From Selaginella moellendorffii (lineage: Eukaryota > Plantae > Lycopodiophyta), in assembly GCF_000143415.4 (NCBI RefSeq), contig NW_003314313.1, positions 390,418 to 454,417 of the forward strand: a stretch of DNA of 64,000 nucleotides, read 5' to 3'. The notes below the pieces were generated by a model. It had not been told where the DNA came from. It searched no databases and saw nothing but the letters and a program-made list of their open reading frames with translations. Made by a program: the position numbers and the translations under genes. Of the stretch, positions 32,551 to 55,931 are shown in pieces; position 1 is the first letter of the stretch, and the number at the start of each line of letters is the position of its first letter.

Positions 32551-34619
32551 AGCTGAATGAAAGAGCTCTATTATGACTTGAATGAAATATCGGAGTTTTG
32601 TTTCTAACCTCTTGCCGGGCAGCCGGAATATCGCGTGGTCAGAGACTTAGATTGATATCACAGCTCTCTTTCACATTGTCCCTTTTAAATTATGCTTCAA
32701 AGAATGGTTATACTGTGTGGTTGACCCACTTAAGCTTGCCAAAGAAACTGGGCATGCGACTGGGTATTGGAAGAGATTATAAGCATCGCTTTGTCCCCAC
32801 ATAAAAGCAATGAGTCCTTCAAATAGAGTGTTAATTGGCCGGCCTCCATGATCACTCCAGCATGCTATTAAACTTCCATGTTCCCCACGGTAAAAAATTT
32901 ATGGAAGTCTTGAAATCTGAAGCCTGGAGTGCAAGAGATGAACTAAAGCAACGAAGAAGAGGTTTCATGATGATCTTTAACAAACATTCTCGGGATGAAT
33001 CCAGTAGCGATGATGATCTTTGGCTGCAATATATCTGGCACGCTTTTTGGGAAGAAAAGATCGGTCTTGATCAACACAAGTAGAAATTTGTTTGCGGTTT
33101 CACTCGATAAAAGCATTTGTTTGCGTCTCAAGAGAGCAGTAGCCTAAACGAACACATAGAAGCTCAGTTTCCCTGTTCTCCTTGTGCTTGCTGGTTGGAT
33201 GGCAAACGAGAGCACTTTCTTTAGGAGAGGCCAGGAGAATCATTATTTCGAAAGCGAGAGTCGAAGTGGGGACTTGGTAGAGTGTATTAGGGTCAGGGTC
33301 AACCCTCACATTGGATCCCTATGTGCATGGTCCACCATATAGGAATGGGGGCAGTAGGCAGGAATGGTCACAGAGTTAAAAGTTCCTCAAGAGGATCTCC
33401 CACTATTGAAGGGTCTCCCATAATGTTTGGACTAAGTAAGTTGCTTCATCATTGCTTTCTTTTGCTTGTCACTTCATTGGAGGAGACCATCAGATCCCTT
33501 GGGAGTAAATTTGTGATTTTTTCCTGTAGTTATTGCAACTTTTTTCCTGCCAACTTGTACTTCCAGAATGTCTTCATTGGCATTAGATCGAGAAAGCGAT
33601 CAGCTCACGACTCCATAGTCACGCGAGAAAAAAAAGAAATGGATCCTCCAATCGAGCATGATCTACATGCGGCAGCGATCCTCCTCTGTTTCAGAACTTT
33701 AAATTTTGATAGCTTTCTTTTAGACCAAGATGGCACCAGTGAAAGTGAGTTCCAAAGGGCCAGGGAAATGGCACTAGGGCGTGCTCATCCAAGCAGCATG
33801 GCGATTTGTTTCGCCGCGGATATACATCAGTTTTGCCGCTATAGTTTTTATGGAGATGCCTTGTGGAGAATTATGTGTTTGTTCTTAAAAAGGACTAGCA
33901 AGTCGTGGTAGACAATTGTGTTCCTAGTGAGTCTCTATAATCTGATTGTCGATATAAGCACATTCTTGTGAATTTAAACAAGACAGGCATCTTCAATATA
34001 TAATCTTGTGGTCGTGGGTTCGAACCACGGCGCATGAGGTGATTTTAAAATTGGCGCGAATCTTGTGAACAACGGGCATTTGGAGGACGAAGTTGTGATG
34101 GCGGCCTAAGCAAGGTGGCGGAGGCGAGGGAGATCTTCAACTGGATGGCAGAGCTTGATGCTCATTACGAGGCCAAGGAGATGCTAGCCTCGGATGGAAT
34201 GAGGCCACAAACGCAGTGTGATTCCCGCACTGGACGTTGTAATTTGTGGAAGTTGAGGGCTCGCGTACGCGCAACTAATTTTAAGATGGACTGGTCATGG
34301 GTATGGCAAAATATCATGTCGATCGGCGCTGGACTGAAAACAATCCCAAGAAATCAGACATGTCGATCGGTGCTCGACTGAAAACAATCCCAAGGAATCA
34401 GACGGAAGCTTTCTCATACTCCGGGGACTCGGCCCTCTCAATGTTAAGACGCCACCGCTCATGATCAATTCTCTATGAATGCTTTAGAAGGTTCCTGTTT
34501 TTCACTTGGATACCATGGTAAGAACCTCTGATCATGACAGTGAAATCACTGATGCAATGAGGAAACCAAAGCAGTTCAAGACAGTCTACTTCAATTGTTC
34601 TGATGATGATTTACCAGTG

Positions 34620-35341
34620 NNNNNNNNNNNNNNNNNNNNNNNNNNNNNNNNNNNNNNNNNNNNNNNNNNNNNNNNNNNNNNNNNNNNNNNNNNNNNNNNN
34701 NNNNNNNNNNNNNNNNNNNNNNNNNNNNNNNNNNNNNNNNNNNNNNNNNNNNNNNNNNNNNNNNNNNNNNNNNNNNNNNNNNNNNNNNNNNNNNNNNNNN
34801 NNNNNNNNNNNNNNNNNNNNNNNNNNNNNNNNNNNNNNNNNNNNNNNNNNNNNNNNNNNNNNNNNNNNNNNNNNNNNNNNNNNNNNNNNNNNNNNNNNNN
34901 NNNNNNNNNNNNNNNNNNNNNNNNNNNNNNNNNNNNNNNNNNNNNNNNNNNNNNNNNNNNNNNNNNNNNNNNNNNNNNNNNNNNNNNNNNNNNNNNNNNN
35001 NNNNNNNNNNNNNNNNNNNNNNNNNNNNNNNNNNNNNNNNNNNNNNNNNNNNNNNNNNNNNNNNNNNNNNNNNNNNNNNNNNNNNNNNNNNNNNNNNNNN
35101 NNNNNNNNNNNNNNNNNNNNNNNNNNNNNNNNNNNNNNNNNNNNNNNNNNNNNNNNNNNNNNNNNNNNNNNNNNNNNNNNNNNNNNNNNNNNNNNNNNNN
35201 NNNNNNNNNNNNNNNNNNNNNNNNNNNNNNNNNNNNNNNNNNNNNNNNNNNNNNNNNNNNNNNNNNNNNNNNNNNNNNNNNNNNNNNNNNNNNNNNNNNN
35301 NNNNNNNNNNNNNNNNNNNNNNNNNNNNNNNNNNNNNNNNN
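34620..35341. other. Assembly gap (722 N)
   Basis: Run of N. Confidence 1.
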
Positions 35342-35557
35342 CCTTTTCTAGCAAACCCACCACCTACACCAGATGCCGCAACTGGGCTTTCACCGTAAAT
35401 GCCAGACCTGATTCATTTCTCTATCGTATGAAGGCATTTTGGCCAGGATCGGAGTGACAAGTTCTGGACAAGCAGAATAGATACTCGTCAGGACAATACA
35501 TATATCTTTATTATAATTACTATTTAATAATCAATACAAAGCCAAGTAGTCAATGCT

Positions 35558-36300
35558 TCATTTAGGTGCATACAAGCTGATGTATTGTTTCCTGGCACCA
35601 GCAAACGGCCTTGAGATACGGAGTATGATACGAATATGTTACCTGACGCGGTGCTCGTCCTGTGGCCTGTTGTAAGGCGTCCAAACTGGTTTTCCCACAA
35701 AGAAACGCATAGCCTGAAGCATCAGGAGATAAATTCGTGTGTGATCTCAATACCACCTTGACGTAATTGTTGTTATCCAGAGTGAAGCGAGGGTAGCTTC
35801 CAGCAGGAAGTACGATCATGTCTCCCTTCTTCGCCCAAGTCTCTCACATCGAAGTAGCCTGCGTTTGTCAAACGATACTTACATCAAGCTGTTCTTCTCA
35901 ATTACTACTATCGCTTTTGGTCTAAATTGGAAGCCGAGTTTGCTAGTTACCGCTTCCATCGAGGCAGTAGCGGATCTCCTCGTCCAGATGGATGTGCTCC
36001 TCGAAGAAGCTCTGATCTTGTGCTCGCAGTTTGGCAGCTTCTCCGGACTCACGGTGATGATATCCTGTGTGAAACAAAGAAATCAACATAAGCTTTTTTT
36101 GCAAATTACTGTAGCTTTGCTCGTCTCTTCCGATCCAAGAGCTACCTGGAGTATCCTCGCTTCTTTCGTATCTCCTGTAGCTTTGAGTCGGTCTCGTACT
36201 GATCTGCGTCAAGATCGCAGTGCAAAACACCCAGGGCACCAAAGCGTTTCCAAGGTGAGAAGCAGCAGAACAAAGAAATCTCACAGAAAACCTGCGAGCT
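35558..36300 (-). pseudogene. ARD duplicate, disrupted
   Basis: Most of first coding exon missing, several small deletions and a frameshift near 36012, metal-ligand His replaced (YHRF to YPRF). Confidence 0.9.
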
Positions 36301-37661: not shown

Positions 37662-37739
37662 CAATCCAGCTGCGTACTCTGATCCTCCAGTCCAGTCTTC
37701 TCATTCGAAAGCCTGTAAGCACAGTAAGGTGTGAGAGGA

Positions 37740-40700
37740 ATGTCTCAAACACAAGCTGAGTGTACCATCAAAGTCGGATACGATGCTGTTGTTGTTGGAT
37801 CGGGCTACGGAGGATCAATTGCTGCCTATCGACTCGCAAAAGCGGGACTCCGTGTGTGTGTTCTAGAAAAGGGAAGACGATGGGATCCTCACGAGTTTCC
37901 AGCAACGCCATGGCAGCTGATTTCCAATATGCGATTTTTCACTCCGTTTGGAAGAATAGGAAGGAGGAATGCTCTTTATGAGGTAAGTCTGTACCGCATT
38001 GTGTTCAAACACATGACACAGTTGGTCCATTTTTGAAGGTGCACAGCAACGGAGACTCGATCGCACTAGTTGGCTCAGGACTGGGAGGAGGCTCACTAGT
38101 GAATGCTGGCATTATAATGCCCACACCGAAAAGAGCACGAAAGCATCCAAAATGGCCAAGCGAGTGGGAGGAAGACTGGGAGAAATACGAAGCACAATCC
38201 CACAGCATTCTGGAGCCGGAATATACTCAGAATGAGCCACCAAAGTCCAAAGTGCTAGACCAAATTGCAAACGAGATAGAGGACGCAGCAAGAGATTCCA
38301 TGAAGTTGACAATAAGTTTCAATCAGAAGAAGAATGCTGCTGGAGTTACACAAAAGGAATGTATTTCATGCGGTAACTGTCTATCAGGATGCAGGTACAA
38401 TGCAAAGAGCTCAACAGACAAAAATTACCTCGAACTAGCCGCACAGGTACTTTTCCAGCCAAAACTGAAGGCACATCTTCTTACGGAAATCGTATGTGCA
38501 GGCCGGAGCCAGAATTTGCACGCAGACGGAAGTGATGTTCATCTTGGATACCTCTAGCCACGGAGAAGAATTTAATTGTCAACCCTGCAATCACGAAGCA
38601 AATTGCAAATCAGTAGCTACTAGAAGGTGGCGTGTGTACCTGAATGAAGTCAATTATATTTCAGCAGACTACGTCATTCTAGCTGGTACCACCCTGTAAA
38701 CGCTTTGACCTTTTATCGCTAACATCCCTTTTCTACTTCAGCTGGTGTTCTTGGCACGAACGAGATCCTCCTGAGATCAAAAGAGCGAGGCCTACAACTG
38801 TCCGAACAGTTGGGGCACGGAGTTAGCTCCAATGGAAATAATATCGCTTACATAACAGGCACAGCTGCACAAACTCAAGCTCGAGGACTAAGAGAAAATG
38901 AGTTCTCAAGGACTCCCATGCAGCTACGTCCTGGACCAGTCATATCAAGTTCACACACATCATCACTTGGTTTCACCATACAGGTAATATTACCTTGAAA
39001 ACACTTAAGTTAAACACTCTTACAGGGATCCTCTATTCCTCGAGCAACTCCCGAGACTTTACTGAGGGGAGTGATTACTTATGGCCAGCATGACTACGGA
39101 TTCCTTGTTGGTATATGGGAACGCATCAAGCATTGGACAGGAATGAAAAACAGCCAAGCTCTAGTATTGAATATGATGGGATATGACGCTGCTGACGGGC
39201 AAATCAAGCTAGACAAGGCAACAGGAAGACTGGAATACAGTGCAGCGAAGGACTTACTTTTTCACCAGAAGCTTCGGACCGCTGAAAGATTGGCAGCCCG
39301 CCTTCGTGGGAAGCTATACATGAGTCGCTTCAGAAGTGTTACAGTTCATCTTTTGGGAGGTTGCAACGCAGCACCAGACTCATCCACTGGCGTGACAAAC
39401 GCAAGCGGCCAGGTTTTCTTCCCTAAGAAGAACAAATATCAGTTGAATCAGCCAACGAAAGTTCATTCTGGCCTCTACGTGTGCGATGCCTCTTTGATTC
39501 CATGCTCCGTTGGATTGAATCCGGTCAGCACCATCTCTATAGTTGCAGAGAGAGTTGCGAATGGAATTGTCAACGACGCACACAACTACCTGTCAAAAAA
39601 TATTCAGCACGAGGTATTGACTGGCGATCTCAGTGATTTCAAGTCAAGGACATACCTCAACTCGCGGCTTTCTTGCGAAATGGAGAGCAGCCACGTCATT
39701 ATCCACGAAAAACTGGCAGGAAATATTGGAGGAGCTCCTTGCACGCTGCGATTGGTGATGCATATGGGACAAGACAAGGATAGGGCTGCAAGTAATCTCA
39801 CATTTGGAGATAGTCACCCTCTGCTGCGTGGATATGTTGGAGGCGATGTTCTTATTCCTTCGCTGGAACCAAGTCCACTTTATGTGGTTGACGGATACGT
39901 AGATATGTGCCATGTCGATGAAAGAACTCCTTTCACTCAATATATGCACTATCACCTGGTTCTGTCAACAAACACAGGCACCAGGTAAGTTATCCTATCT
40001 TCTGTCAATCTGATCTCATTGAAAACTATGGTTTCTGAAGGTATACTTTGGACGGAAGGAAAGAGATGCGACCATTCATGAGCGGCCTAATGTGTTACTC
40101 TGATGCAACCACACTACATATCGTTGTTCGAGCTCAGCAGGACTCACCAAAACCGGTTGCCTTGAAAGGAAAAGTGCGGGTAACTCTTCCCGAGTTACTT
40201 AAGTCCCTAATATTGTTACGAGGGCCAAGGAAGCGGGAGTTTGTAGGAAGACTCCTGGAAACACTTGCTAGGACGTACTTGATGAGAACACCGAGAGCGA
40301 CAAGCCGGGAAATGGCAAAACCAGAAGACTCGACCGAAAACTATCCAAGCTATGTACTTCATGAGATTGCCACAGGTAAAAACAGACTTGACTCTTTTAT
40401 ACAGGCAGTGACAGATTGCTTGTGCAGGAGATGGTGCCCGCATTACCTGCAAGCAATGGTGCTCGAAGGGTGCTGCTCAGGATGAGAACGTCAAAATTGT
40501 TTTGCTTCTCAATGGTTATGCCACAGAGAGTTTCTGTGTCCCTACGGAAAACCACGACATCGTAAGAACACTTCTAGAGAACGACTATGAACCTTGGCTC
40601 TTGCAAACACGTTTCCATCCGTCGCATCCGACTCCAACTTCTTTCACTTTCGATGACGTCGCTCGGTTCGACATTCCAGCCGGTATGTGCACTCTGTCAA

Positions 40701-41708
40701 AAACCGAAAAAGTTTAATGCTGGAAATTTTTACAGCATTTGCAAAGATGAGCCACGTCAAGAGAAAGTCGGTAACAGCACACGTTATTGCTCATTGCATA
40801 GGAGGAGTCTCAATTCACATGAGCTTGATGGGTGGATACATACCTCCATCGTCGATAGCATCACTGATTTGCACAAACTCGTCCATGTTCTTCAACTTCG
40901 TTCCATCAGCGCTCGTCAAGTTGACTCTGCCTCTCATTCCTGTAAGTAGTTTTTGCGTTAGCCATAAAAAAAAGGAGACTTACGTCTTGTTGTTTATCTA
41001 CTACAGATTTCTATGACAATCCTGGGAAAGAAGCTCGTCATACCAATAAGTCCTCCGCAAGAAGAACCGATGTCGTGGCGACACAAGCTACTCCGCGCAA
41101 TTGCTCGAGCGATACCACGCACGGAGCGCTGCCACTGTGACGAATGCAACGTTTTCTCAGGAATTTTCGGCAACACATTCTGGCACGAGAAAGTCAGACT
41201 GGAAACGCACAACTGGTTGACCAAGCAGGCAGTGCAAACTCTATCAATGGCAGCATTGCCACACGCACGTAAAATCGTTCTCGCGGGACACGTAGTAGAC
41301 AACGAGGGGAAAAACGAGACTTACATGGCTCATCCGGAGAGGCTAGCAGTCCACACCACGTATATCTCCGGCGGCCGCCCCATTCTCGTCACTCCAGAGA
41401 CCTCTCTCCGCGCGCACGGATTCATGAAGCGGCATCACCCTGGATTCAGCCACGCTCGAATCGTGATTCAAGACTACGGACACTCCGACCTGTGGATCGG
41501 AGAGCATTCGCACGGGGACGTGTTCCCGCTGGTGCTGGAGCGCCTCAAATCCGCCGGGAGAAGCCATCCGAGCGATAACCTCCAGAAGAATGCGATACTG
41601 CCGTGGGAGGAGTCGCTGATCGCTGGTAGGAATGGCGCGTGCGGCGGCGTTGTCTTCATCCTGATGGCGCTGCTCGCGATCGCCTTGCTCTGCTTGGTAA
41701 ACCATTGA
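37740..41708 (+). CDS. Cholesterol-oxidase-like GMC oxidoreductase / alpha-beta hydrolase fusion protein, copy 1 (9 exons)
   Basis: YDAVVVGSGYGG..VLEKG (FAD Rossmann), GLGGGSLVNAG, CISCGNCLSGC (38360-38392), VHLLGG and GLNP (GMC His/Asn), LLLNGY, AHCIGG (40789-40806), YGHSDLWIGE, hydrophobic C-tail. Canonical introns. Confidence 0.9.
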
Positions 41709-42586
41709 ATCTGCCAGTACAATGGTGATCACAACTTGTGATTTGATGCAAACAAATCAGGGAGAATGCACTGCTCCCGTGACAGCAAGCCCCATCATCT
41801 GAAACTATTACATTGTTAGCTAAGAAAGAGCATCCTTTAAACCCTTTTGTGTGCTTCCAATTCCATGCTATTTGGGAACTTATGACCACTATATGGCTGC
41901 ATCAAGTGGTGGTGCTTGTCAAACCAATCCAATGTTTCCATACCTCAATTAGAACAAGAGAGAGCATGTTAGACTTATCATTAGCTGCACTTGCCAGTTA
42001 GTGCTGGAGTTTGTCGCCACTGGAGTATAGTGAGTTTTTCTAGCTCATTTTTTTGACTCGGATGATAGCAATCCATGTTGACTAGTAGTTTACCAATTAA
42101 GAATTTTTATTTTACTATTGTTGTTGAGGAGTTTTTTTTTTTCCTTCATGAATGAACAGTCTTAAAAGTCCACTTATCTTCCCATAGTTTAGTATCAACA
42201 AGGTTTAACCAATCTCTTAAATTTTTGCCAAAGTATTTTATAAGCCTTAGGATTTTTGTATTTTTTTATAACAAAAAGCTTGAGCAATTTTTTTTCTTAT
42301 TTCCTTTTAACAATTGCTAAATTTTTTTTTTCTCTTCCACTTTATTTCTTCTTTAATTTTTTCACTTTCTCCTCAAATTTAATTTTTTTTCTTTAAAGGA
42401 GTGGGTATGCATAGAAGTCCGATCCTAACAAATTCAACAAATTCAAAGTCAAAATTTGTATGCGTGTTGTGCTGACGGATGGTACCTTGATAGGCAGTTT
42501 TCCATTCTAGTTCTTTGTCCCTAGAACATCTCGACGAGGGTGAATTTCTGTAAGAAAGAGGGGAGAACAAAAGTGAGACGACTTTT

Positions 42587-45500
42587 ATGTCTCAAACGCA
42601 AGTGGAACGTACCATCCAAGTCGGGTACGACGCGGTTGTTGTTGGATCTGGCTATGGAGGATCGATTGCTGCATATCGACTCGCAGAAGCAGGAATCCGT
42701 GTGTGCGTTCTCGAGAAAGGAAGACGATGGGAGCCTCACCAGTTTCCAGCAACGCCCTGGAAATTGCTTTCCAGCACGCGTTTTCTTACTCCATTCGGAA
42801 GCATTGGGAAGAAGGATGCTCTCTATGAGGTGAGTTACTGAATAGCATTGTACTTCTCCTGTTAAAACATATATACACACAGTTAGTCCATGTTTACAGG
42901 TGCACAGCCATGGAGACTCTGTCGCTCTAGTTGGGTCAGGACTGGGAGGAGGCTCGCTAGTGAATGCTGGAATCATCATGCCCACACCGAAAAGAGCACG
43001 AAGGCATCCAAACTGGCCAAAAGAGTGGGAGGAAGACTGGGATCTATACGAAGCAAAATCTCACAGCATTCTGGAGCCTGAAGAAATCCTGCACGAGGCT
43101 CCAAAATCAAAAGTGCTAGACAAAATTGCAAACGAGATAGAGGACGCAGCAAGAGATTCGATGAAGTTGACAATAAGTTTCAATCAGAAGAAGAATGCTG
43201 CTGGAGTTACACAAAACGAATGCATTTCATGCGGTAACTGTCTATCAGGATGCAGGTACAACGCAAAGAGCTCAACAGACAAAAATTACCTTGAACTAGC
43301 CGCACAGGTACTTGTCCAGCCAAAACTGAAGGCACATCTTCTTACGGAAACCGAATGTGCAGGCCGGAGCCAGAATTTGCACGCAGACGGAAGTGATGTT
43401 CATCAGCGAGAACTCCAGCCATGAAAAGGAAACTTGTTGTCAACCCTGCAATCATGGAGCAAATTGCAAATCAGTAGCTAAAAGAAGATGGCGCGTGCAC
43501 CTGAATGAAGCGGATTATATTTCAGCAGACTACGTCATTGTAGCCGGTACTATCGTGTAAAAGCTGGAAACCTTGGTCGCTGATATTTGCTGACCTTTCT
43601 TTCTTCAGCTGGTGTTCTTGGCACGAACGAGATCCTCCTGAGATCAAGAGAGCGAGGCCTACAACTGTCCCAACAGTTGGGGCACGGAGTTAGCTCCAAT
43701 GGAAATAATATCGCTTACATAACAGGCACAGCTGCACAAACTCAAGCTCGAGGACTAAGAGAAAATGAGTTCTCAAGGACTCCCATGCAGCTACGTCCTG
43801 GACCAGTCATATCAAGGTCACACACATCATCACTTGGTTTTACCATACAGGTAATATTACCTTGAAAACACTTAAGTTAAACACTCTTACAGGGATCCTC
43901 TATTCCTCGAGCAACTCCCGAGACTTTACTGAGGGGAGTGTTTACTTATGGCCAGCATGACTACGGATTCCTTGTTGGTATATGGGAACACATCAAGCAA
44001 TGGACAGGAATGCAAAACAGCCAAGCTCTAGTCCTGAATATGATGGGATATGACGCTGCTGACGGGCAAATCAAGCTAGACAAGGTAACAGGAAGACTGG
44101 AATACAATGCAGCGAAGGACTTACTTTTTCACCATAAGCTTCGAACCGCTGAAAGGTTGGCAGCCCGCCTTCGTGGGAAGCTATACATGAGTCGCTTCAG
44201 AAGTGTTACAGTTCATCTTTTGGGAGGTTGCAACGCAGCACCAGACTCATCCACAGGCGTGACAAACGCTAGCGGTCAGCTGTTCTTCCCTGATACAAGC
44301 AACGTTCAGTTCACGAAGACAACAAAAGTTCACGCAGGCCTGTACATTTGCGATGCCTCTTTGATTCCATGCTCTGTTGGATTGAATCCTGTCAGCACGA
44401 TCTCTATAGTTGCAGAGAGAGTTGCGAATGGAATTGTCAACGACGCACACAACTATCTGTTAAAAAAGTTCCAGCACGAAGGCGATCATAGTAATTTCAA
44501 AACAAGAACGTACCTCAACTCGCGGCTTGCTTGCGAAATGAAGAGCAGCCGCGTCATTATCCACGAGAAAATGAGAGGAAATATTGGAGGAGCTCCTTGC
44601 ACACTGCGATTAGTGATGCATATGGGACAAAACAAGGATACGGCTGCAAGTAATTGCGCGTTTGGAGATTGTCATCCTCTACTGCGTGGATATGTTGGAG
44701 GCGATGCTCTTATTCCTTCTCTGGAACCAGGTCCTTTATATGTGATTGATGGATACGTGGATATGTGCCATGTCGATGAAAGAACTCCTTTCACTCAGTA
44801 TATGCACTATCACCTGCTTTTGTCAACAAACACGGGAACCAGGTAAGTTATCCTATCTTCTGTCAATCTGATCTCATTGAAAACTATGGTTTCTGAAGGT
44901 ATACTTTGGACGGAAGGAAAGAGATGCGACCATTCATGAGCGGCCTGATGTGTTACTCTGATGCAACCACGCTACATATCGTTGTTCGAGCTCAGCAGGA
45001 CTCACCAAAACCGATTGCCTTGAAAGGAAAAGTGCGGGTAACTCTTCCCGAGTTACTCAAGTCCCTAATATTCTTACGAGGGCCAAGGAAGCGGGAGTTC
45101 ATAAGACGGCTCCTGGAGACACTTGCTAGGACGTACTTGATGAGAATACCTAGGACTCGAAGAGAAAAGGTGACCAGGACACAACACTTGACAGACAACT
45201 ATCCAAACTACGTTCTTCATGAACTCGTGACAGGTATTAAAAAGAATTTTTAACAGGCAGTCATTCTGACGCTGGTCTAGGGGATGGTGTGCACATTACC
45301 TGCAAGCAATGGTGCTCACAAGATTCTGCGGACAACCAAAACTCTAGAGTAGTTTTGTTGCTCAATGGTTATTCCACAGAGAGCTTCTGGCTTCCTACAG
45401 AAAGTAATGACATCATACGAACGCTGATACAGAATGATTACGAACCTTGGCTGCTGCAAACACGCTTGCATCCATTGCATCCAACAAAAAGTTCTTTTAC

Positions 45501-46566
45501 TTTCGACGATATTGCTCGCTTCGACATTCCATCTGGTATGGTCCTGTTTTAAGGAGGAAAATGGTTAACGTTAAAGCTCTGCAGCGTTTGCGAAGATAAA
45601 CCAAGTCAAGAAAAAGCAGGTAGCTGCACACGTTATTGCTCACTGCATAGGGGGACTCTCAATTCACATGAGCTTGATGGGTGGATACATACCTCCATCT
45701 TCGATAGCATCACTAGTTTGCACAAACTCGTCCATGTTCTTCCACTTGGTTCCATCAGCGCTCGTGAAGCTGACTCTACCTCTCATTCCTGTAAGTATTT
45801 TTTGCGTTAGCCATCTACAAGCCCATGCTTACATGTTTTTCTACAGATTTCTATGAAAATCCTGGGAAAGCACACCATCATGCCGATCAGTGCTCCAAAA
45901 GAACCAATGTCGTGGCGGCACAGACTACTGCGCTCAATCGCTCGAGCTATACCACGTACTGAGAGCTGCCCATGCGATGAATGCAATGTTTCCTCAGGAA
46001 TTTTCGGCAGCGCATTCTGGCACCAAAACGTTCGGCTAGAAATGCACGACTGGCTGAATAAGCAGGCAATGCCAGTTCTTCCAATGGCAGGATTTCCACA
46101 TTTGCGATTAATCGCTCTAGCGGGACACATAGTCGACAGTAAAGGAGACAAGGAGACTTACATGGCTCATCCGGAGAGGCTAGCGGTGCATACGACTTAT
46201 ATTTCCGGCGGCCGCCCCATTCTCGTCACTCCAGAGACCTCTCTCCGCGCGCACGGATTCGTGAAGCGGCATCACCCTGGATTCAGCCACGCTCGAATCG
46301 TGATTCCAGATTACGGACATTCTGACCTGTGGATCGGAGAGCGTTCGCCAGAGGACGTGTTCCCGCTGGTGCTGGAACGCCTCAAATCCGCCGAGAGAAG
46401 CGACCCGACCGATAATCTCCAGAAGAACGCGATACTGCCGTGGGAGGAGCCGCTGATCGCTGGCAGGAATGGCGCCAGCGGCAGCGTCGTCTCCATCCTG
46501 ATGGCGCTGCTCGCGATCACCTTGCTCTGCCTGCTAGCTCAGATAAACCCTAGCCCTAGAATTTGA
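42587..46566 (+). CDS. GMC oxidoreductase / alpha-beta hydrolase fusion protein, copy 2
   Basis: Same motifs and exon structure as copy 1. No disablement noticed. Confidence 0.9.
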
Positions 46567-47732
46567 ACTTCCCGCCAAAAGAAAGAAATCTACACCTAAT
46601 TTATTGGATAGCGTGTTCTTGGCTATTCGTCTCCTTCTCGTTATGCTCGAGGCCCAATCTGTGAGAAACACTGGTATCGATTCTCACAAACTTACCATCT
46701 GGAAGCACTCCACAAAGACTTTCGTCCAAAGCTTTTCCTGTCTAAGCCTCCATGGGAACTGGGAAAGCGCTTCAAAGTTTGCATGACTTGTTTGTCTACA
46801 GGCGGAGAGAAAAGCATCATTTGCTTGGCAGCCTTTTTCAAGTTTAATGCTACGTACCTTGGATGAGATTTTTGTTCGCGACTTTCAGCCAGTAGGTGAT
46901 TTGCGCTGAAAGGAAAACTTCTAGTGTTGATATAAAACTAAGAGCTGGAAACTTTGACTTGATCTACCTGTGTTTGTAACGCCTGTTGCTAGAATGCACG
47001 TCTGAAGCACGGGGTCAGAATGAGAAAAAAAAGAGAGTAAAACCCACCATGTCTGTAACGTCGATCGCAAAAGATACAGTAGGCAGCACTTCGTTTTCCC
47101 GGTTTTGCGGAAACACTTGCAACTTGGGCCGGGACAGTGAATCGAATCCAGTTTCTCCTTGAAAGTTTTGTATCTTCGGGTTTCGCAAGTTGACCCTTTG
47201 GCAGCATCCAAGAAAGTCCAAAGCCTCACCTCCACAGTGTATTGACTTTGAGCACGTCTTGACCGCAATCGAATCAATTTCTTGGCTGCTGTTCCAGCGA
47301 GTGTGTCAACTGTTGGCTTCTTCTAGTCGCTCAAGGCTGGCCCTGACAGGAACACCAACAGTTGTTAAAGCCTCTACCAACACAAGAGAAAAATAAAAAG
47401 TGAAGGAAACAAATTCAACGTCAAGGACAGTACGCACAGCACATACTGGCCCTTGATGCACTGATTATGTGTCTGACCTTTGGATTTGTATATGCATTTT
47501 GTGCACGCACCCCTCCGTGTGCTGAGTTCACTTCCTTAAGGCCTGTTTACATAGTACACGGTCAGTAAAATTTTATAAAAAAATGTCGAAGCGGCGAGTA
47601 TATAAGCGATGCATGCTGTTACCTTGATCAGAAGTCTTCGGCTCGCTCTAGAACAGCTCGACGAGCGAGGTGATAACGTTGTCAAGGAAGGAGTGAATTT
47701 CTGTAAGAGTGAGAACAAAAGTGAGACGAATT

Positions 47733-50700
47733 ATGTCTCAGACACAAGTCGAACGTACCATCAAAGTCGGGTACGATGCGGTTGTTGTTGGATCTGGCTA
47801 TGGAGGATCGATTGCTGCATATCGACTCGCAGAAGCAGGGATCCGTGTGTGCGTTCTGGAAAAAGGCAGACGATGGGAGCCCCACGAGTTTCCAACAACG
47901 CCCTGGAAATTGCTTCCCAGCATGCGCTTTCTTACGCCATTCGGAAGCTTTGGGAAGAAGGATGCTCTCTATGAGGTGAGTTTCTGGATCGCATTGTACT
48001 TCTCCTGTTAAAACATATATTCACACAGTTAGTCCATGTTTACAGGTGCACAGCCACGGAGACTCTGTCGCTCTAGTTGGGTCAGGACTGGGAGGAGGCT
48101 CACTAGTGAATGCTGGAATCATCATGCCCACACCGAAAAGAGCACGAAGGCATCCAAACTGGCCAAAAGAGTGGGAGGAAGACTGGGAGAAACACGAAGC
48201 AAAATCCCACAGCATTCTGGAGCCTGAATATGCTCAGAATGAGCCACCAAAGTCCAAAGTGCTAGACCAAATTGCAAACGAGATCGAGGATGCAGCAAAA
48301 GATTCCATGAAGTTGACCATAAGTTTCAAACAGAAGAAGAATGCTGCTGGAGTTACCCAAAACGAATGCATTTCGTGCGGTAACTGTCTATCAGGATGCA
48401 AGTACAACGCAAAGAGCTCAACAGACAAAAATTACCTCGAACTAGCCGCACAGGTACTTTATCGCTGTATTGAAGGCATATCTTCTTACGGAAATCGAAT
48501 GCGCAGGCAGGAGCCAGAATTTGCACGCAGACGGAAGTGATGTTCATCAGCGAGAACTCAGAAGAATTCTGTTGTCAAAACTGCAATGATGGAGCAAATT
48601 GCAAATCAGTAGCTACAAGAAGATGGCGTGTGCACCTGAATGAAGTGGATTATATTTCGGCAGACTACGTCATCGTAGCCGGTACTATCTTGTAAAAGCT
48701 CGAAACTTTCGTTGCTAATATTTGCTGCCCCTTCTTTCTTCAGCTGGTGTTCTTGGCACGAATGGGATCCTCTTGCGATCAAAAGAGCGAGGCCTACAAC
48801 TGTCCCAACAGTTGGGATACGGAGTTAGCTGCAATGGAAATAATATAGCTTACATAACAGGCACAGCCGCACAGACTCAAGCTCAAGGACTTCGAGAAGA
48901 AGATTTCTCAAGGACTCCCATGCAGCTACGTCCTGGTCCAGTCATATCAAGTTCACATACATCATCACTTGGCTTTACAATACAGGTAATATGAGTGAAA
49001 TAAGCTTATATCAAGCTAAACACCTCTTTCAGGGCTCTTGTATTCCTCAAGCTGCTCCAGAATTTCTACTAAGGGGAGTCATTACTTATGGCCTAGGGGA
49101 CTACGGGTTTCTCACTGGTATCTGGGAACAAGTCAAACAATGGACAGGAACGCAGAACAGCCAAGCTCTGGTATTGAATATGATGGGATATGACGCTGCT
49201 GACGGGCAAATCAAGATAGACAAGCTAACAGGAAGAGTGGCATACAGTGCAGCGAAGGACTTACTTTTTCATCATAAGCTTCGGACCGCTGAAAAGTTGG
49301 CAGCTCGCCTTCGTGGGAAGCTGTACATGAGTCGCTTCAGAAGTGCTGCCGTTCATCTTTTGGGAGGTTGCAACGCAGCAACAGACTCATCCACCGGCGT
49401 GGCAAACGCAAACGGCCAGATTTTCTTCCCTGAGACGAGCAACGGTCAGTTCAGGAAGACAACAAAAGTTCACGCAGGCCTGTACGTTTGCGACGCCTCT
49501 TTGATTCCATGCTCAGTTGGACTGAATCCGGTCAGCACGATCTCAATAGTGGCAGAGAGAGTTGCGAATGGCATTGTCAACGATGCGCAGAACTACCTGT
49601 CACAAAAGTTTCAGCACGAAGTATTTACTGGCGATCTTAGTAATTTAAAATCAAGAACATACCTCAACTCGCGACTTGCTTCCGAAATGCAGTGCAGCTA
49701 TGTCATTATCCACGAAAAATTGAAAGGAAATATTGGAGGAGCTCCTTGCACACTGCGACTGGTGATGCATATGGGACAAGACAAGGATACGCCTGCAAGC
49801 AATCGTTTGTTTGGAGATAGTCATCCTCTCCTGCGTGGATATGTTGGAGGCGATGTTCTTATTCCTTCGCTGGAACCAGGTCCTCTATATGTGGTTGACG
49901 GATACGTAAATATGTGCCATGTCGATGAAAAAACTCCTTTCACTCAGTATATGCATTATCACCTGCTTCTGTCAACAAACACGGGCACCAGGTAAGTTTT
50001 CCTTCCTCCTCTAAATCTGGTCTGGTCTCATGCAAAACATGCTATGGTTTGTGAAGGTATACTTTGGACGGACGGAAAGAGATGCGACCATTCATGAGCG
50101 GCTTAAAGTGCTTCTATGAGTCGACCACGCTACATGTCGTTGTTCGAACTCAGCAGGAGTCATCAAAACCGGTTGTCCTGAAAGGAAAGTTGCGAGTAAC
50201 TCTTCCCGAGTTACTTAAGTCGCTAATATCGTTGCGAGGACCAAGGAAGCGGGAGTTTGTAGGACGGCTGATGGAAACACTTGCTAGGACGTACTTGATG
50301 AGAACACCAAGGACTCCAACAGAGAAGGTGACCAGGACACAAAACTTGACGAACAACTATTCAAACTACGTGCTTCATGAACTCGTGACAGGTACGAAAC
50401 AAATTTCTTAACAGGCAGTCATTCTGACACGAGCATGATGGATGGCTGTAGAGGACGGTGTACACATTACCTGCAAGCAATGGTGCTCAAAAGATGCTGC
50501 GGAGGACCAAAACTCCAGAGTCGTTTTGTTGCTCAATGGTTATTCCACAGAGAGCTTCTGGCTTCCTACAGAAAGTAATGACATCATACGAACGCTGATA
50601 CAGAATGATTACGAACCTTGGCTGCTGCAAACACGCTTGCATCCATTGCATCCAACAAAATATTCCTTCACTTTCGACGATATTGCTCACTTCGACATTC

Positions 50701-51748
50701 CATCTGGTATGTTCCTGTTTTTTCAAGGAGGAAAATTTTAATCGCTAAAATTTGCAGCGTTTGCGAAGATAAACCAAGTCAAGAAAAAGCAGATAGCGGC
50801 ACACGTTATTGCTCACTGCATAGGAGGACTATCAATTCACATGAGCTTGATGGGTGGACACATACCTCCATCGTCGATCGCATCGCTAGTTTGCACAAAC
50901 TCGTCCATGTTCTTCAACTTGGTTCCATCAGCGCTCGTGAAGTTGACTCTGCCTCTCATCCCTGTAAGTGGTTTTTGCGTTAGCCATCTACGAACTGAGA
51001 ATTACATCTTTACGTTTTTCTACAGATTTCTATGAAAATCCTGGGAAAGAACACCATCGTGCCGATAAGTCCTCCTAAAGAAGAATCAATGCCCTGGCGA
51101 CACAGACTACTGCGCTCAATCGCTCGAGCGATACCACGCACTGAAAGCTGTCCCTGCGATGAATGCAATGTTTTCTCAGGAATTTTCGGCAGCACATTCT
51201 GGCACCAAAACGTCGGGCTAGAAATGCACGACTGGCTGAACAAGAAGGCAGTGCCAGTTCTTCCAATGGCAGGATTTCCACATTTGCGATCAATCGCTCT
51301 AGCGGGACACATAGTCAACAGTGAAGGAGAAGAGGAGACTTACATGGCTCATCCGGAGAGGCTAGCAGTTCACACCACGTATATCTCCGGCGGCCGCCCC
51401 ATTCTCGTCACTCCAGAGACCTCTCTCCGCGCGCACGGATTCATGAAGCGGCATCAGCCTGGATTCAGCCACGCTCGAATCGTGATTCCAGATTATGGAC
51501 ACTCTGACCTGTGGATCGGAGAGCATTCGCACGAGGACGTGTTCCCGCTGGTGCTGGAACGCCTAAAATCCGCCGAGCGGAGCGATCCGAGCGATAATCT
51601 GCAGAAGAACGCGATATTGCCGTGGGAGGAGCCACTGGCCGGCCACAAGAAAGCCGCTGGGAGGAGCGCCGTGGCCATCCTGATGGCGCTGCTCGCGATC
51701 GCCATGCTGTGCTTGCTTGCCCTGATAAACCCTAGCTCTAGAATTTGA
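47733..51748 (+). CDS. GMC oxidoreductase / alpha-beta hydrolase fusion protein, copy 3
   Basis: Same motifs and exon structure. No disablement noticed. Confidence 0.9.
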
Positions 51749-51950
51749 AATTCCCGCCAAAACTGCTTGAGAAAAGAGAAAAAGAAAATTCCTTGTGAAC
51801 AGGACCAGGATTGAATATTCACGTTTGTTCTTTTCACAAAGACAAGAATGATTGAAACAGGGTCGTTTGTTCTTCTCATAAACTCCAACATGCGAGAGCT
51901 CCTATAAAATAGCTTCCAAGCAAATGAGAAGAAAGCGGTATCGTTTTGAG

Positions 51951-54900
51951 ATGGCTTCTCCGCCTCGCACCTTCGATGTTGTAGTGGTGGGCTCTGGCTA
52001 TGGCGGAGCCATCGCTGCGTGCCGGCTCGCTCAAGCTGGTTTGAGCGTCTGCGTTTTGGAGAAAGGCAAGCGATGGGAGCCTCGGGATTTTCCAACGAAT
52101 GTGTGGCAGCTTCTTTCCACCATGCGCTTCCACACTGGATTCGGCAGCTTTGGAAGGAAGAACTCGTTATACGAGGCGAGCAAAGCTTGAAAGTAAAAAG
52201 ACCTCTCACTCACCTTTGATGTTGTTAATGTTCTCAGGTGTATGTTGATGGCGATTCACTCGCCGTGACAGCGTCTGGGCTTGGAGGCGGATCTCTGGTG
52301 AACGCTGGGGTGATCATGCCGACGCCTCGAAGAGCTCGCAGTGATCCGCGCTGGCCGGAAGAGTGGGACAGAGACTGGGACGAGTTTGAGGCGAAGGCAC
52401 AAGAGATCTTGCAGCCCGAGAGTGTGCCACACGACTTTCCTAAGACACAGATCATGGATAAGCTTGTAGAAGATATCGAAGACATGTCTAGAGTTCCAGT
52501 GAAGCTTACCATGACATTCTCGAGTAAGAAAAGTGTCGCTGGAGCAGCACAGGATGCCTGCGTTGCCTGTGGGAACTGTTTAACAGGATGCTCTTACAAC
52601 GCCAAGAGCTCCACTGACAAGAATTATATCCAGCTCGCTGCACAGGTATGTCGAAGCCAAAAAGTTTAGTTTTTGGTTGAGCAAAAAACAAAACTTTTGC
52701 AGGCAGGAGCTCAAATCTACACCGAGAGAGAAGTCCTGTTTGTAAGCCAAAGTCCAAAAGCTACAAGCAGCCACTTTCAGGCTCCCTTTGGCAAGGCTCG
52801 AAGCAGGAGATGGCGAGTTCATGAAAACTCAGTGGACTACATCTCAGCAGATTACGTCGTGTTATCCGGTAAGAAAAACTTGACACTCTAGAGGTTGCTG
52901 ACTTTCATCTGCCTTCTTCTCTCTCAGCTGGTGTTTTAGGAACGACTGGGATCTTGCTCAGATCAAAAGAGCGAGGCTTGCAACTTTCAGAAAAGCTGGG
53001 GAGTGGAGTCAGTTGCAATGGAAACAACATTGCATTCGTAACAGAAGCCTCTGCACAAACTCAAGTACGCGGACTAGGAAAGGAAAAGTTTCCAAGCACG
53101 CCGCTCCCACTAAGACCAGGCCCATCTATTTCCAGCTCGCACACCTCTTCTCTCGGCTTCACCATTCAGGTAACATTTCGCAATGCATCAAAGCTCTAAC
53201 TTCTACGACCATAGGCTTCAGCAATCCCGAAAGCAAGTTCCTACGTAATCTTGAAAGGAATCCTCATAAACAGGTGGCCAGTCAGCTGGGGAATCATTCA
53301 TGCTCTTTGGGACCAGTTCATGCAGTGGATAACTAGACAGAACATTCAGGAACTTCAACTTAATTTGATAAGCTATGACTCCGGGGATGGACACGTTACC
53401 TTGAACGAGAAATCTGGAAAAATCACGTACCAGGCATCCAGTGACTTGCTCTTCTGCAAAAAACTCGAACGAGTTAAGAAGATTGCTTCTAAACTTGACG
53501 GGAAGCTCTTTCTACCTCGCTTCCGGAGCAACTCGGTGCATCTCCTAGGAGGCTGCAATGTTTCGACGAGCATCACTTCCGGGGTCACGAGTCCGAGTGG
53601 ACAGGTTTACGCTCCACCTGCAAGTAATCAAGCCAACGCTCATAACAGTGAGGAAAGGAGCAACAAGAATGTCCATGCAGGCTTATACATCTGTGATGCA
53701 TCGGTAATTCCCTGTTCGATAGGCGTCAATCCAGTAGGCACTATAGCAATTGTGGCAGAAAAGGTATCAAGCTGCATAGCAAAGGATGCAAAATATTACC
53801 TTTTCTCGCGAAGGCAAAGCTTGAGTTCCTTGGAACATCCTGTCCAGGACGAGCCACTGAAAACCAGCAAAGTTACTGTTGTCAATGAGACACTCGACGG
53901 AAGTTTCGATGGCATACCTTGCACGTTGAAGCTAACAATGCATATAGTTCCGAAAACGACGAACTGCACAACCATTCTCCATGGCCAAGTAGGAGGAAAG
54001 CTGCTCATCCCGTTGCTAGAAAAGGACCCCTTGCATGTCTTGGACGGATACGTCAACCTGTGTTCGCTGAGCGAGAAGTCTCCCTTCACTCAGTTTATGC
54101 GTTACCATCTGCTTCTATCCACGTCTTCAGGCCGCCGGTAAGTGAAGTCCTTCTAGAAATCCAGAAAGTTACGAGCAGACTGGCAGGTTCTTGTTGATGG
54201 CAAAAAAAGAGATGAGGCCCTTCCTCTGCGGTCTCTGGATCTATAAGGAATCGACCACACTTAACGCACAGCTCGTCGATCTTTCAGGCAAGGAGAGTGC
54301 CAACCCTTCAGTACTCCAGGGAACTTTGCACGTCAGTGTCTTCAATCTTCTGAGGTCGTTGATAAGCTTGAAAGGACCAGGGAAATTTTCGTTTCTTAAG
54401 CAGTTGCTATCGAGTCTGCTGCAAACATACTTTTCTGGACGTCCCCGGCGAATTGATCAACCTTCCGAAGTAAATGTCAGATCGGAAGACGAAGTACTCG
54501 ACTATCCTAGTTATGTTCATCATGAGATGCAAACCAGTAAGTGCAAAAAACAGGTGACGCTACTTCAAGCGGTCCTAATGCACAGTACGATGTTGCTTGC
54601 AGAAGATGGAGCAAAAGTTACCTGTAAACAATGGCCACTTTCCATGGACCAGAAGAAAGGACTGGTGCTGCTTTTGAATGGCTACTCCACTGAAAGCTTC
54701 TGCCTACCAACCGAGCCACAAGATATGGTCCGATCGCTTCTGCAAAATGGATATGAGGTATGGCTGTTGCAGACAAGAGTTCACCCATCTCACCCCGGCC
54801 AAGAAAAGTTTGATCTTGATGACATTGCGAAGTTTGACATTCCAGCAGGTAAGCTGCATCACATACACGCAAAGTAGAGTCAGCTAACGAGTTTTGCAGC

Positions 54901-55849
54901 GTTTGAAAGAATGGAACAATCAAAAAATGGCCCAGCTTGTGCTCACGTCATTGCGCATTGCATCGGCGGACTACTGATTCATATGGCCATAATGGGAGGA
55001 CACTTACCTGTCTCTCGTGTTGCTTCACTGGTCTGCACAAACTCGTCAATGTTTTTCAGCCTGGTTCCATCGGCATTGGTGAAAATGGCACTTCCTCTGA
55101 TACCTGTAAGTTTTAAGAATCAGTGCACGAGCTAACAAAGATTTGCGCAGATATCTATGAAAATTCTGGGAGATCATAAAACACTTCCAATCACCAATCA
55201 GAAGCGTGAACAAAAACTACCAACAAGACACAAACTTATCCGAGCAATAGCTCGAGCGATACCACGAACGGAGTGCTGCGTGAGCGACGAATGCAGCATT
55301 TTCTCAGGCATATTTGGCAACACATTCTGGCACGAGAACGTAAGAAAAGAAATGCACGACTGGCTTGTGAGCCAAGCGGTACCAGTTCTACCACTGCAAG
55401 CTTTCCCACATCTAAGAAAGATCGCGAGAGCTGGCCATATAGTAGATGCCAGGGGACAAGAAACTTACATGACAAAACCGGAGAGGCTCGCGCTTCCCAC
55501 GACTTACATCTCCGGCGGCAAACCAATCCTGGGAACACCACAAATGTCTGAGCAAGCGCACGAATTCATGAAGAAACACCATCCCACCTTCGATCACGCT
55601 CGCTTCGTGATCACGAGCTATGGCCATTCGGATCTATGGATCGGGGAGAGCAGCCACACCGACATTTTCCCGCTGATCATCGAGCGCCTTCGATCCGTGG
55701 AGAAAGATCCAGCTCCGGAGCGGCGGGAAGCAAACAGGAGGAGAAATCTACCTCTGCCATGGGCGATCGCTCCAGCCCGTGCGAGAATACTTCCTGTGGG
55801 AGTGGCATTAGGGTTTCTCATGTTATGCTTTGCTTTTAAAAGTTTCTAG
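51951..55849 (+). CDS. GMC oxidoreductase / alpha-beta hydrolase fusion protein, copy 4 (most divergent)
   Basis: FDVVVVGSGYGG, CVACGNCLTGC, SVHLLGG, GVNP, AHCIGG, YGHSDLWIGE, hydrophobic C-tail. Intron 1 needs a GC donor at 52176. Alternative upstream ATG at 51924. Confidence 0.88.
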
Positions 55850-55931
55850 TTTCCCTCCCCGCCATAGCGTAGGGTTTCTCTCTTGGCGCCAATCGTCCAG
55901 CTTCAATCGGCTCCAACCGATCGAAATTTCA

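Follow-up and report, generated by a model that had tools for sequence, protein, structure and literature searches.

What kind of enzyme do four neighbouring genes of Selaginella moellendorffii encode, each of which appears to join a cholesterol-oxidase-like flavoprotein to a lipase-like hydrolase, and what could such a polypeptide do? The genes occupy positions 37740-55849, on the forward strand, of a 64,000-nucleotide stretch of contig NW_003314313.1, referred to below as the window. A first-pass annotation had described them as four intact head-to-tail genes of about 1,100 or more codons, and had suggested that each product couples an H2O2-forming alcohol oxidation to a hydrolytic or acyl-transfer step at a membrane. 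It appears that both halves do belong to a single polypeptide, predicted to be anchored by its C-terminal tail, but that the flavin domain is more likely a dehydrogenase with an iron-sulphur (Fe-S) electron exit than an oxidase.

Four complete genes were recovered, head-to-tail and with the same outer limits as first described. They stand out in the window as four direct-repeat units, spaced 4.1-5.2 kilobases apart. A bacterial-style list of open reading frames breaks each unit into fragments, as expected since these are eukaryotic genes with short introns. The exon junctions were solved with homology-guided spliced models, for which the NCBI proteins LOC112350638 (P0001) and LOC112345107 (P0151) served as guides. 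The copies are labelled c1 to c4, and residue numbers follow P0001, the product of c2.

37740-41708, plus strand: copy c1, 1177 residues, spliced model; exons 37740-37982, 38039-38446, 38502-38685, 38742-38983, 39026-39984, 40041-40375, 40428-40682, 40736-40941, 41007-41708
42587-46566, plus strand: copy c2, 1180 residues, spliced model and joints in RNA-run contigs; exons 42587-42829, 42900-43307, 43363-43546, 43609-43850, 43893-44842, 44899-45233, 45281-45535, 45585-45790, 45847-46566
47733-51748, plus strand: copy c3, 1181 residues, spliced model; exons 47733-47975, 48046-48453, 48507-48681, 48744-48985, 49033-49991, 50057-50391, 50452-50706, 50758-50963, 51026-51748
51924-55849, plus strand: copy c4, 1163 residues, spliced model; exons 51924-52175, 52238-52645, 52703-52868, 52928-53169, 53215-54137, 54187-54536, 54603-54848, 54900-55105, 55151-55849

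Each copy consists of 9 exons and 8 introns of 42-70 nucleotides at conserved positions, has no internal stop and encodes a protein within the range of 1163-1181 residues. The c2 product is 100% identical to 'uncharacterized protein LOC112350638 [Selaginella moellendorffii]', and that of c3 is 97% identical to LOC112345107. Identity is 84% between c1 and c2 and 81-88% among c1-c3, while c4 is the most divergent copy (54-56% identity to the other three, with saturated synonymous sites). The introns are all GT-AG, the sole exception being a GC-AG intron, the first of c4. There the donor at 52176, known from the spliced model, reads GC (gagGCGAGC), where the other copies have GT.

The flavin and hydrolase halves form one gene that yields one spliced transcript. 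The evidence comes from c2 and from contigs of four runs listed as RNA (the kind of run is flagged as uncertain), which were aligned to positions 41000-46700. Because these contigs confirm every one of the eight splice joints predicted for c2, each with GT..AG ends, the two halves are assigned to a single gene. The contig depth is continuous over c2 and drops to zero in the intergenic interval 41955-42527. The possibility that the halves are separate genes, the long reading frames being an annotation artefact, had already been raised in the first-pass annotation. Nothing was found in its favour, though no single contig covers the whole of c2. Against it, the boundary between the flavin domain and the middle domain lies within exon 5, and introns 5, 6 and 7, which link the flavin half to the hydrolase half, are bridged by individual contigs. 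Moreover, the same architecture is predicted independently in more than 100 plant genera and in bacterial genes that have no introns. The artefact explanation, to which we give almost no credence, is rejected on the RNA-run evidence.

The last exon of c1 is also covered by these contigs. For c4, the fraction of sampled words present in them is 0.40-0.48, a measure of the presence of words and not of splicing. The ratio of nonsynonymous to synonymous substitution rates (dN/dS) among c1-c3 is 0.26-0.28 and is alike across the protein (0.22-0.31 in each catalytic domain); the copies are therefore maintained under purifying selection and are not decaying.

The same contigs also contain joints with CT..AC ends, which correspond to GT..AG when read on the minus strand: 45542>45692 and 45787>46161 (each in two runs), 42857>43289 and 41438>41489. 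These joints, between 41438 and 46161, could stem from antisense transcription with splicing over copy 2, or from mis-assembly between paralogues.

From the N-terminus, the protein comprises a cholesterol-oxidase-like GMC domain that binds flavin adenine dinucleotide (FAD) and carries a C-x2-C-x2-C-x3-C motif, a beta-rich middle domain, an alpha/beta-hydrolase domain and a putative C-terminal tail anchor. Whole-protein searches used P0001 and P0151 as proxies, and c1, c3 and c4 were followed by script only. The motifs GSGYGG, CxxCGNCxxGC, HLLGG, G[LV]NP, AHCIGG and GHSD, as well as about 20 hydrophobic residues at the C-terminus, are kept in c1-c4. The AlphaFold2 model of P0001 is a compact multidomain structure with a predicted local distance difference test score (pLDDT) of 84.7 and a predicted template modelling score (pTM) of 0.80; a separate model of residues 572-1135 reached 89.8 and 0.89, respectively. 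Every element named in the first-pass annotation (the GMC His/Asn pair, the cysteine motif, the beta-rich middle, the hydrolase, the hydrophobic tail and the lack of a signal peptide) was thus seen in the four copies or in the model.

The flavin domain was identified by its motifs and matches. The GxGxxG FAD-binding motif appears as GSGYGG at residues 20-25 in c1-c3 and 23-28 in c4, and Pfam reports FAD/NAD-binding matches. GMC_oxred_N scores 53.1 bits in P0001 (Pfam cut-off 23), and GMC_oxred_C (cut-off 24.6) scores 30.1 bits in exon 5 of c1, 21.4 in the whole of P0001 and 27-50 in orthologues. The closest solved folds to the N-terminal 555 residues are the Streptomyces and Brevibacterium cholesterol oxidases (template modelling score by target, 0.72-0.74). 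A second tier, at 0.64-0.68, is made up of Fe-S-bearing GMC dehydrogenases, namely fructose dehydrogenase and the Burkholderia glucose dehydrogenase BcGDH. The catalytic residues and the cysteine motif are encoded as follows.

44214-44390, plus strand: GMC catalytic pair in c2, His467 in HLLGG (44214-44228) and Asn524 in GLNP (44379-44390)
39347-39361 and 39512-39523, plus strand: equivalent pair in c1
49354-49368 and 49519-49530, plus strand: equivalent pair in c3
53539-53553 and 53722-53733, plus strand: equivalent pair in c4
43221-43253, plus strand: C-x2-C-x2-C-x3-C codons (Cys189, Cys192, Cys195 and Cys199) in c2
38360-38392, plus strand: the same motif in c1
48367-48399, plus strand: the same motif in c3
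52559-52591, plus strand: the same motif in c4

His467 and Asn524 are nearly invariant in the family alignment. A residue-level alignment pairs the segment around Asn524 with that around Asn485 of Streptomyces cholesterol oxidase; His467 was assigned by motif and fold match and not in this way. In 25 diverse members of the family the four cysteines (C-x2-C-G-x-C-x2-G-C) are invariant. Among 82 related GMC proteins of 450 residues or more, 65 carry the motif, which is general to the wider cholesterol-oxidase-like clade. Cysteines are lacking at the corresponding positions of Streptomyces cholesterol oxidase. A 70-residue profile of the cysteine segment, searched against the PDB, retrieved 4Fe-4S ferredoxins and polyferredoxins (E = 7e-6 for the clostridial ferredoxin 1fdn; best 7.5e-10). 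Single-sequence PDB searches with individual exons gave weak cholesterol-oxidase and ferredoxin matches and nothing usable for the hydrolase exon, and it must be noted that profile searches were required to obtain the PDB matches of the cysteine segment and of the hydrolase domain.

Two bacterial enzymes give this motif its likely meaning. In AceDH, a GMC acetol dehydrogenase of Methylacidiphilum, Cys187, Cys190, Cys193 and Cys197 (CDQCGFCFQGC) are reported to hold a [Cu-4Fe-4S] cluster, a 4Fe-4S core with copper, that lies 10.9 Å from the flavin, and the electron acceptor is cytochrome c (10.64898/2026.06.11.731722, preprint). In BcGDH, a 3Fe-4S cluster is bound by Cys212, Cys218 and Cys222 (PMC6719666). 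At the level of sequence, Cys189, Cys192, Cys195 and Cys199 of the plant protein match the AceDH ligands in both spacing and position. The motif is a ferredoxin-type [4Fe-4S] signature and probably binds a cluster. Because it resembles that of ferredoxins, is placed as in AceDH and is missing in the Streptomyces cholesterol oxidase, the GMC domain is more likely a dehydrogenase with an Fe-S electron exit than an H2O2-forming oxidase. The earlier expectation that the enzyme makes H2O2 is thus doubtful.

Alternatively, the GMC domain could be a genuine oxidase that, as in type-I cholesterol oxidase, passes its electrons to O2 and forms H2O2, its cysteine motif being structural or zinc-binding and the hydrolase step unchanged. 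The closest solved structures are indeed those of H2O2-forming cholesterol oxidases, the His/Asn pair is retained, and a partner redox protein is not evident in the window. Against this, the cysteine signature is exact, invariant and missing in the solved oxidases, the matching motif in the matching place binds an Fe-S cluster in AceDH, and BcGDH binds one through a related Cys-rich loop. We consider a true oxidase unlikely and favour the dehydrogenase.

The hydrolase half proved to be closest to acid lipases. Searched against the PDB, a profile of this domain matched human gastric lipase (1HLG, 5.5e-18), dog gastric lipase (4.9e-16) and lysosomal acid lipase/cholesteryl ester hydrolase (6.5e-12), followed by polyhydroxyalkanoate (PHA) synthases at about 1e-6 to 3e-7. 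Fold comparison gave the same order: with VIA-align the match to dog gastric lipase 1K8Q (Z 32.1) is well above the rest, and the PHA synthase PhaC is second (Z 26.1). Every Foldseek match among the Swiss-Prot models was an acid lipase or a sterol esterase, with Arabidopsis LIP1/LIP2 and yeast sterol esterase 1 among them. By these sequence and model comparisons, the domain is placed nearest the acid lipases and sterol esterases and next to PHA synthase. Pfam did not assign PF04083 to it. The two motifs that carry its putative catalytic residues are the following.

45638-45655, plus strand: nucleophile elbow AHCIGG (Cys893) in c2
40789-40806, plus strand: the elbow in c1
50811-50828, plus strand: the elbow in c3
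54953-54970, plus strand: the elbow in c4
46315-46326, plus strand: GHSD (His1099 and Asp1101) in c2
41478-41489, plus strand: GHSD in c1
51497-51508, plus strand: GHSD in c3
55622-55633, plus strand: GHSD in c4

AHCIGG aligns with the serine elbow GHSQG of gastric lipase. In place of the GxSxG of acid lipases, the elbow reads A-H-C-x-G-G, and the nucleophile position is Cys in 113 of 113 plant members and in 32 of 35 others, while Ser is found in none. His1099 is present in all 113 plant sequences and in most of the others, and Asp1101 is conserved. Several features weigh against a lipase-type reaction. The position of the lipase catalytic Asp ('GGkD' in 1HLG) is occupied by Ser, Thr or Pro in plants and mostly by Asn elsewhere, the oxyanion 'HG' has become 'NG', and three bacterial members have Gly in place of the nucleophile. 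Because of these replacements, hydrolysis is not assured.

This domain leaves room for two other explanations. In the first, it would be a PHA-synthase-like Cys acyltransferase or ester synthase, in which an acyl or hydroxyacyl group is loaded on Cys893 and moved to a hydroxyl, for instance that of the product or substrate of the GMC domain. The rank of the PHA synthases in both comparisons and the lack of any member with a Ser nucleophile are compatible with this idea, as is the A-H-C-x-G-G elbow itself, which we presume to resemble the PhaC lipase box. However, the acid lipases are clearly the better match by sequence and by fold. Moreover, Pfam scans of the protein detected neither PhaC_N, the N-terminal domain of PhaC, nor a feature for binding coenzyme A (CoA). 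An acyltransferase therefore seems quite unlikely. In the second, the alpha/beta domain would be catalytically silent, serving in lipid binding, membrane docking or metal binding with its Cys and His as ligands, and the chemistry would be confined to the GMC domain. The missing canonical acid, the altered oxyanion motif, the Gly of the three bacterial members and a second conserved set of Cys and His residues in the cap would fit such a role, but it is difficult to reconcile with the retention of Cys893 and His1099 in all 113 plant sequences and most others, and with purifying selection equal to that on the GMC domain. We regard a silent domain as improbable and retain a Cys-dependent lipase-like enzyme as the preferred reading.

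The set in the cap has the form C982-x4-C987 ... H1000-x7-H1008 in P0001 (45967-46050 in c2). Each position is kept in 110-113 of the 113 plant sequences and in about 30 of the 35 others, and the set may form a site for zinc or another metal.

The middle domain and the tail complete the protein.

44560-45120 (approximate), plus strand: beta-rich middle domain coding region in c2, residues ~580-757, from the end of exon 5 into exon 6
46474-46563, plus strand: C-terminal hydrophobic tail in c2
41616-41705, plus strand: the tail in c1
51656-51745, plus strand: the tail in c3
55757-55846, plus strand: the tail in c4

In both AlphaFold2 models residues ~580-722 form 8-10 long strands, which are followed by helices. 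This region has no Pfam match at E<=5, and fold searches with the two-domain model, which were dominated by the hydrolase domain, did not resolve its relatives. Its protein-atlas feature scores are <=0.69 and serve as leads only. The tail forms a helix in the model of P0001 (residues 1150-1174) and is the sole transmembrane-like hydropathy window in the plant proteins. A signal or transit peptide is ruled out, since the FAD fold begins at about residue 13. Sequence and model thus agree on a single putative transmembrane helix within about 30 residues of the C-terminus, with no N-terminal signal and no other transmembrane segment. This is the signature of a tail-anchored protein, whose catalytic domains are predicted to face the cytosol. 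The hydrophobic tail is missing in the listed homologues from bacteria and Diphylleia and is present in the eukaryote transcript P0023, sister to land plants; it appears to be a plant-side addition. The broader proposal of the first-pass annotation, that one polypeptide with a hydrophobic C-terminal tail joins a GMC domain to a Cys-elbow hydrolase, is supported, the two halves being a single spliced transcript in c2.

How widespread is this fusion? A protein search with the largest exon returned full-length relatives of about 1170 residues. The best matches were LOC112350638 and LOC112345107, ahead of more than 100 land-plant proteins that carry the names 'cholesterol oxidase' or 'uncharacterized' or, in a handful of entries, 'long-chain-alcohol oxidase'. 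Bacteria (a Pseudomonadota metagenome-assembled genome and several metagenomes) and the protist Diphylleia have soluble homologues that share the three domains; those of fungi and of Leptospira were judged by accession. The statement, in the earlier annotation, that similar uncharacterised fusions exist elsewhere is supported, as they were found in bacteria, fungi, protists and plants. At five bacterial loci a conserved operon was not found.

In a maximum-likelihood tree, the plant sequences mirror the species tree, from liverworts through Selaginella, ferns and gymnosperms to angiosperms. The family is ancient, and its inheritance within land plants is vertical. All four Selaginella copies fall into a single, fully supported clade, in which c4 splits first and c1-c3 are recent. 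Horizontal transfer into Selaginella, which the first-pass annotation had suggested checking by phylogeny, is rejected, as c1-c4 nest inside the plant clade. Independent duplicates are seen in Marchantia, Adiantum, Persea and Ricinus. In Taraxacum, Salvia, Coptis and Rosa, pairs of accessions lie on one contig, which suggests further tandem copies. Only the four-copy expansion is specific to Selaginella, having arisen by tandem duplication in its lineage. The earlier view of a lineage-specific specialised or defence metabolism is thus weakened, since the family is land-plant-wide, follows the species tree and shows recurrent small tandem duplications.

Among the 120 plant matches listed there is none from Brassicaceae, Poaceae, Fabaceae or Solanaceae, although no dedicated search for absence was made. 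Close relatives of these families (Sapindales, Malvales, Typha, Quillaja and Ipomoea) are among the matches listed. The family could have been lost repeatedly from the main model families.

Some features of the array itself deserve mention. In one pair of copies identity is mosaic, reaching 96-98% in some 300-nucleotide blocks (e.g. 38727-39316 versus 43594-44183) and 72% in others (37738-38037 versus 42585-42884). This suggests gene conversion among copies 1-3. The stop codon of c3 is separated from the ATG of c4 by 175 nucleotides (51749-51923). A putative Dicer-like gene at 55932 would begin about 83 nucleotides beyond the c4 stop (55850-55931). The space for promoters and untranslated regions around c4 is unusually tight, and read-through or shared transcripts are possible. 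Immediately upstream of the array, positions 34001-36000 are AT-rich (GC 0.30, against about 0.45 in the surroundings).

What, then, might the enzyme do? In the bifunctional mechanism that we propose, the protein would be tail-anchored, probably in the endoplasmic reticulum (ER) or in a membrane that faces lipid droplets, and all its catalytic domains would lie in the cytosol. The lipase-like domain would take a lipid ester (steryl, triterpenyl, wax or hydroxy-acid esters being candidates) and form an acyl-S-Cys intermediate, by which a lipid alcohol is freed or acylated. In the presumed order of steps, the GMC domain would oxidise the hydroxyl of this lipid to a ketone or aldehyde. The flavin would be re-oxidised through a [4Fe-4S] (or [3Fe-4S]) cluster on Cys189, Cys192, Cys195 and Cys199, with electrons passing to a protein or quinone acceptor and not to O2. 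Taken as a whole, this tail-anchored dehydrogenase/Cys-lipase has, in our judgement, an even chance of being right. A steryl or triterpenyl ester substrate is an attractive guess because, among characterised proteins, a 3-beta-hydroxysteroid oxidase is nearest to one domain and the cholesteryl/steryl ester hydrolase family to the other, but esters of fatty alcohols or hydroxy acids would be equally possible.

Other points weigh against this mechanism, in addition to the changes in the lipase catalytic residues described above. The sterol interpretation comes solely from the names of the relatives of the two domains. The cofactor, the substrate and the activity of the family are all predicted, and the proximity of the cysteines to the flavin, like a tunnel between the two sites, is conjectural. 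The hitchhiker and cytochrome c subunits of the known Fe-S GMC dehydrogenases are not evident, the genome not having been searched for partners. The bacterial neighbours are lipid-flavoured (patatin, SDR, UbiA, YhhN), yet not conserved.

A more far-reaching version of the proposal, which we advance tentatively and think rather doubtful, would make these proteins the first eukaryotic Fe-S GMC dehydrogenases. As a tail-anchored class that spans the land plants, they would couple the processing of a lipid ester via a Cys acyl-enzyme to oxidation of the freed alcohol. Electrons would pass via [4Fe-4S] into a cytosolic or ER chain (e.g. cytochrome b5 or quinone) instead of forming H2O2, and the beta-rich domain would hand over a hydrophobic intermediate.

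The genes already have public database entries, as uncharacterised proteins, and neither domain family is new. As far as the literature was searched, the new elements are the domain combination, the acid-lipase-like domain with Cys for Ser, the predicted Fe-S cluster in a eukaryotic GMC enzyme and the tail anchor. A characterised orthologue, which according to the first-pass annotation would have refuted its proposal, was not found in that literature, nor was anything else relevant to characterised plant or bacterial members of the fusion. A paper on spruce glycerol oxidase and another on a GDSL sterol esterase proved to be unrelated to the family. Names in the databases such as 'cholesterol oxidase' and 'long-chain-alcohol oxidase FAO4B' probably give a wrong idea of the electron acceptor, and they ignore the lipase-like half.

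An enzyme of about 1170 residues that extends from liverworts to flowering plants, is transcribed and under purifying selection, and has no assigned function is a rare case. If the Fe-S prediction is true, flavin/Fe-S alcohol dehydrogenases of a kind recognised only recently in bacteria would reach into eukaryotes, and a hidden electron route in plant lipid metabolism would be exposed. Loss from Brassicaceae, Poaceae, Fabaceae and Solanaceae, if true, would explain the missing mutants and assays, and would make Marchantia, with one or two copies, the practical study system.

The family can be set beside four known systems. With type-I cholesterol oxidase (Streptomyces and Brevibacterium; 1B4V, 1COY) it has in common the GxGxxG FAD fold, the HxxGG His and the 'GxNP' Asn segment. 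However, those enzymes are secreted, single-domain proteins of about 500 residues that use O2 as acceptor, lack the four-Cys motif at the aligned loop and are 18-19% identical to the family. With the Fe-S GMC dehydrogenases (AceDH alpha of Methylacidiphilum, BcGDH alpha 6A2U and the large subunit of fructose dehydrogenase 7W2J) it shares the GMC fold and a Cys-rich loop some 190-220 residues from the N-terminus. In these enzymes the loop binds the cluster, 3Fe-4S or 4Fe-4S, through which electrons leave, as predicted for the plant family. They differ from it in being bacterial, periplasmic proteins of about 530 residues with a hitchhiker subunit that bears the twin-arginine translocation (Tat) signal and with cytochrome c subunits, and in having neither a lipase domain nor a tail anchor. 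In the plant proteins, conversely, a signal peptide is absent and the C-terminal tail anchor is present. Class I PHA synthase PhaC (9KNJ, 5HZ2, 5T6O) resembles the hydrolase half in its alpha/beta fold and in the Cys at the nucleophile elbow, but has an N-terminal domain of its own; the family matches it more weakly than it matches the acid lipases and offers no evidence of CoA-thioester substrates. PhaC also uses an Asp general base, whose equivalent in the family was not identified, and hydroxyacyl-CoA substrates. The acid lipases (1HLG/1K8Q, 6V7N, the yeast sterol esterases and LIP1/LIP2) share with residues ~780-1125 a 'DxPA' before the elbow, a 'GG' segment and a 'GH' His segment. They use a Ser nucleophile, a catalytic Asp and 'HG', and are free, luminal or secreted enzymes, whereas the domain described here is fused to its flavin partner and, as predicted, cytosolic.

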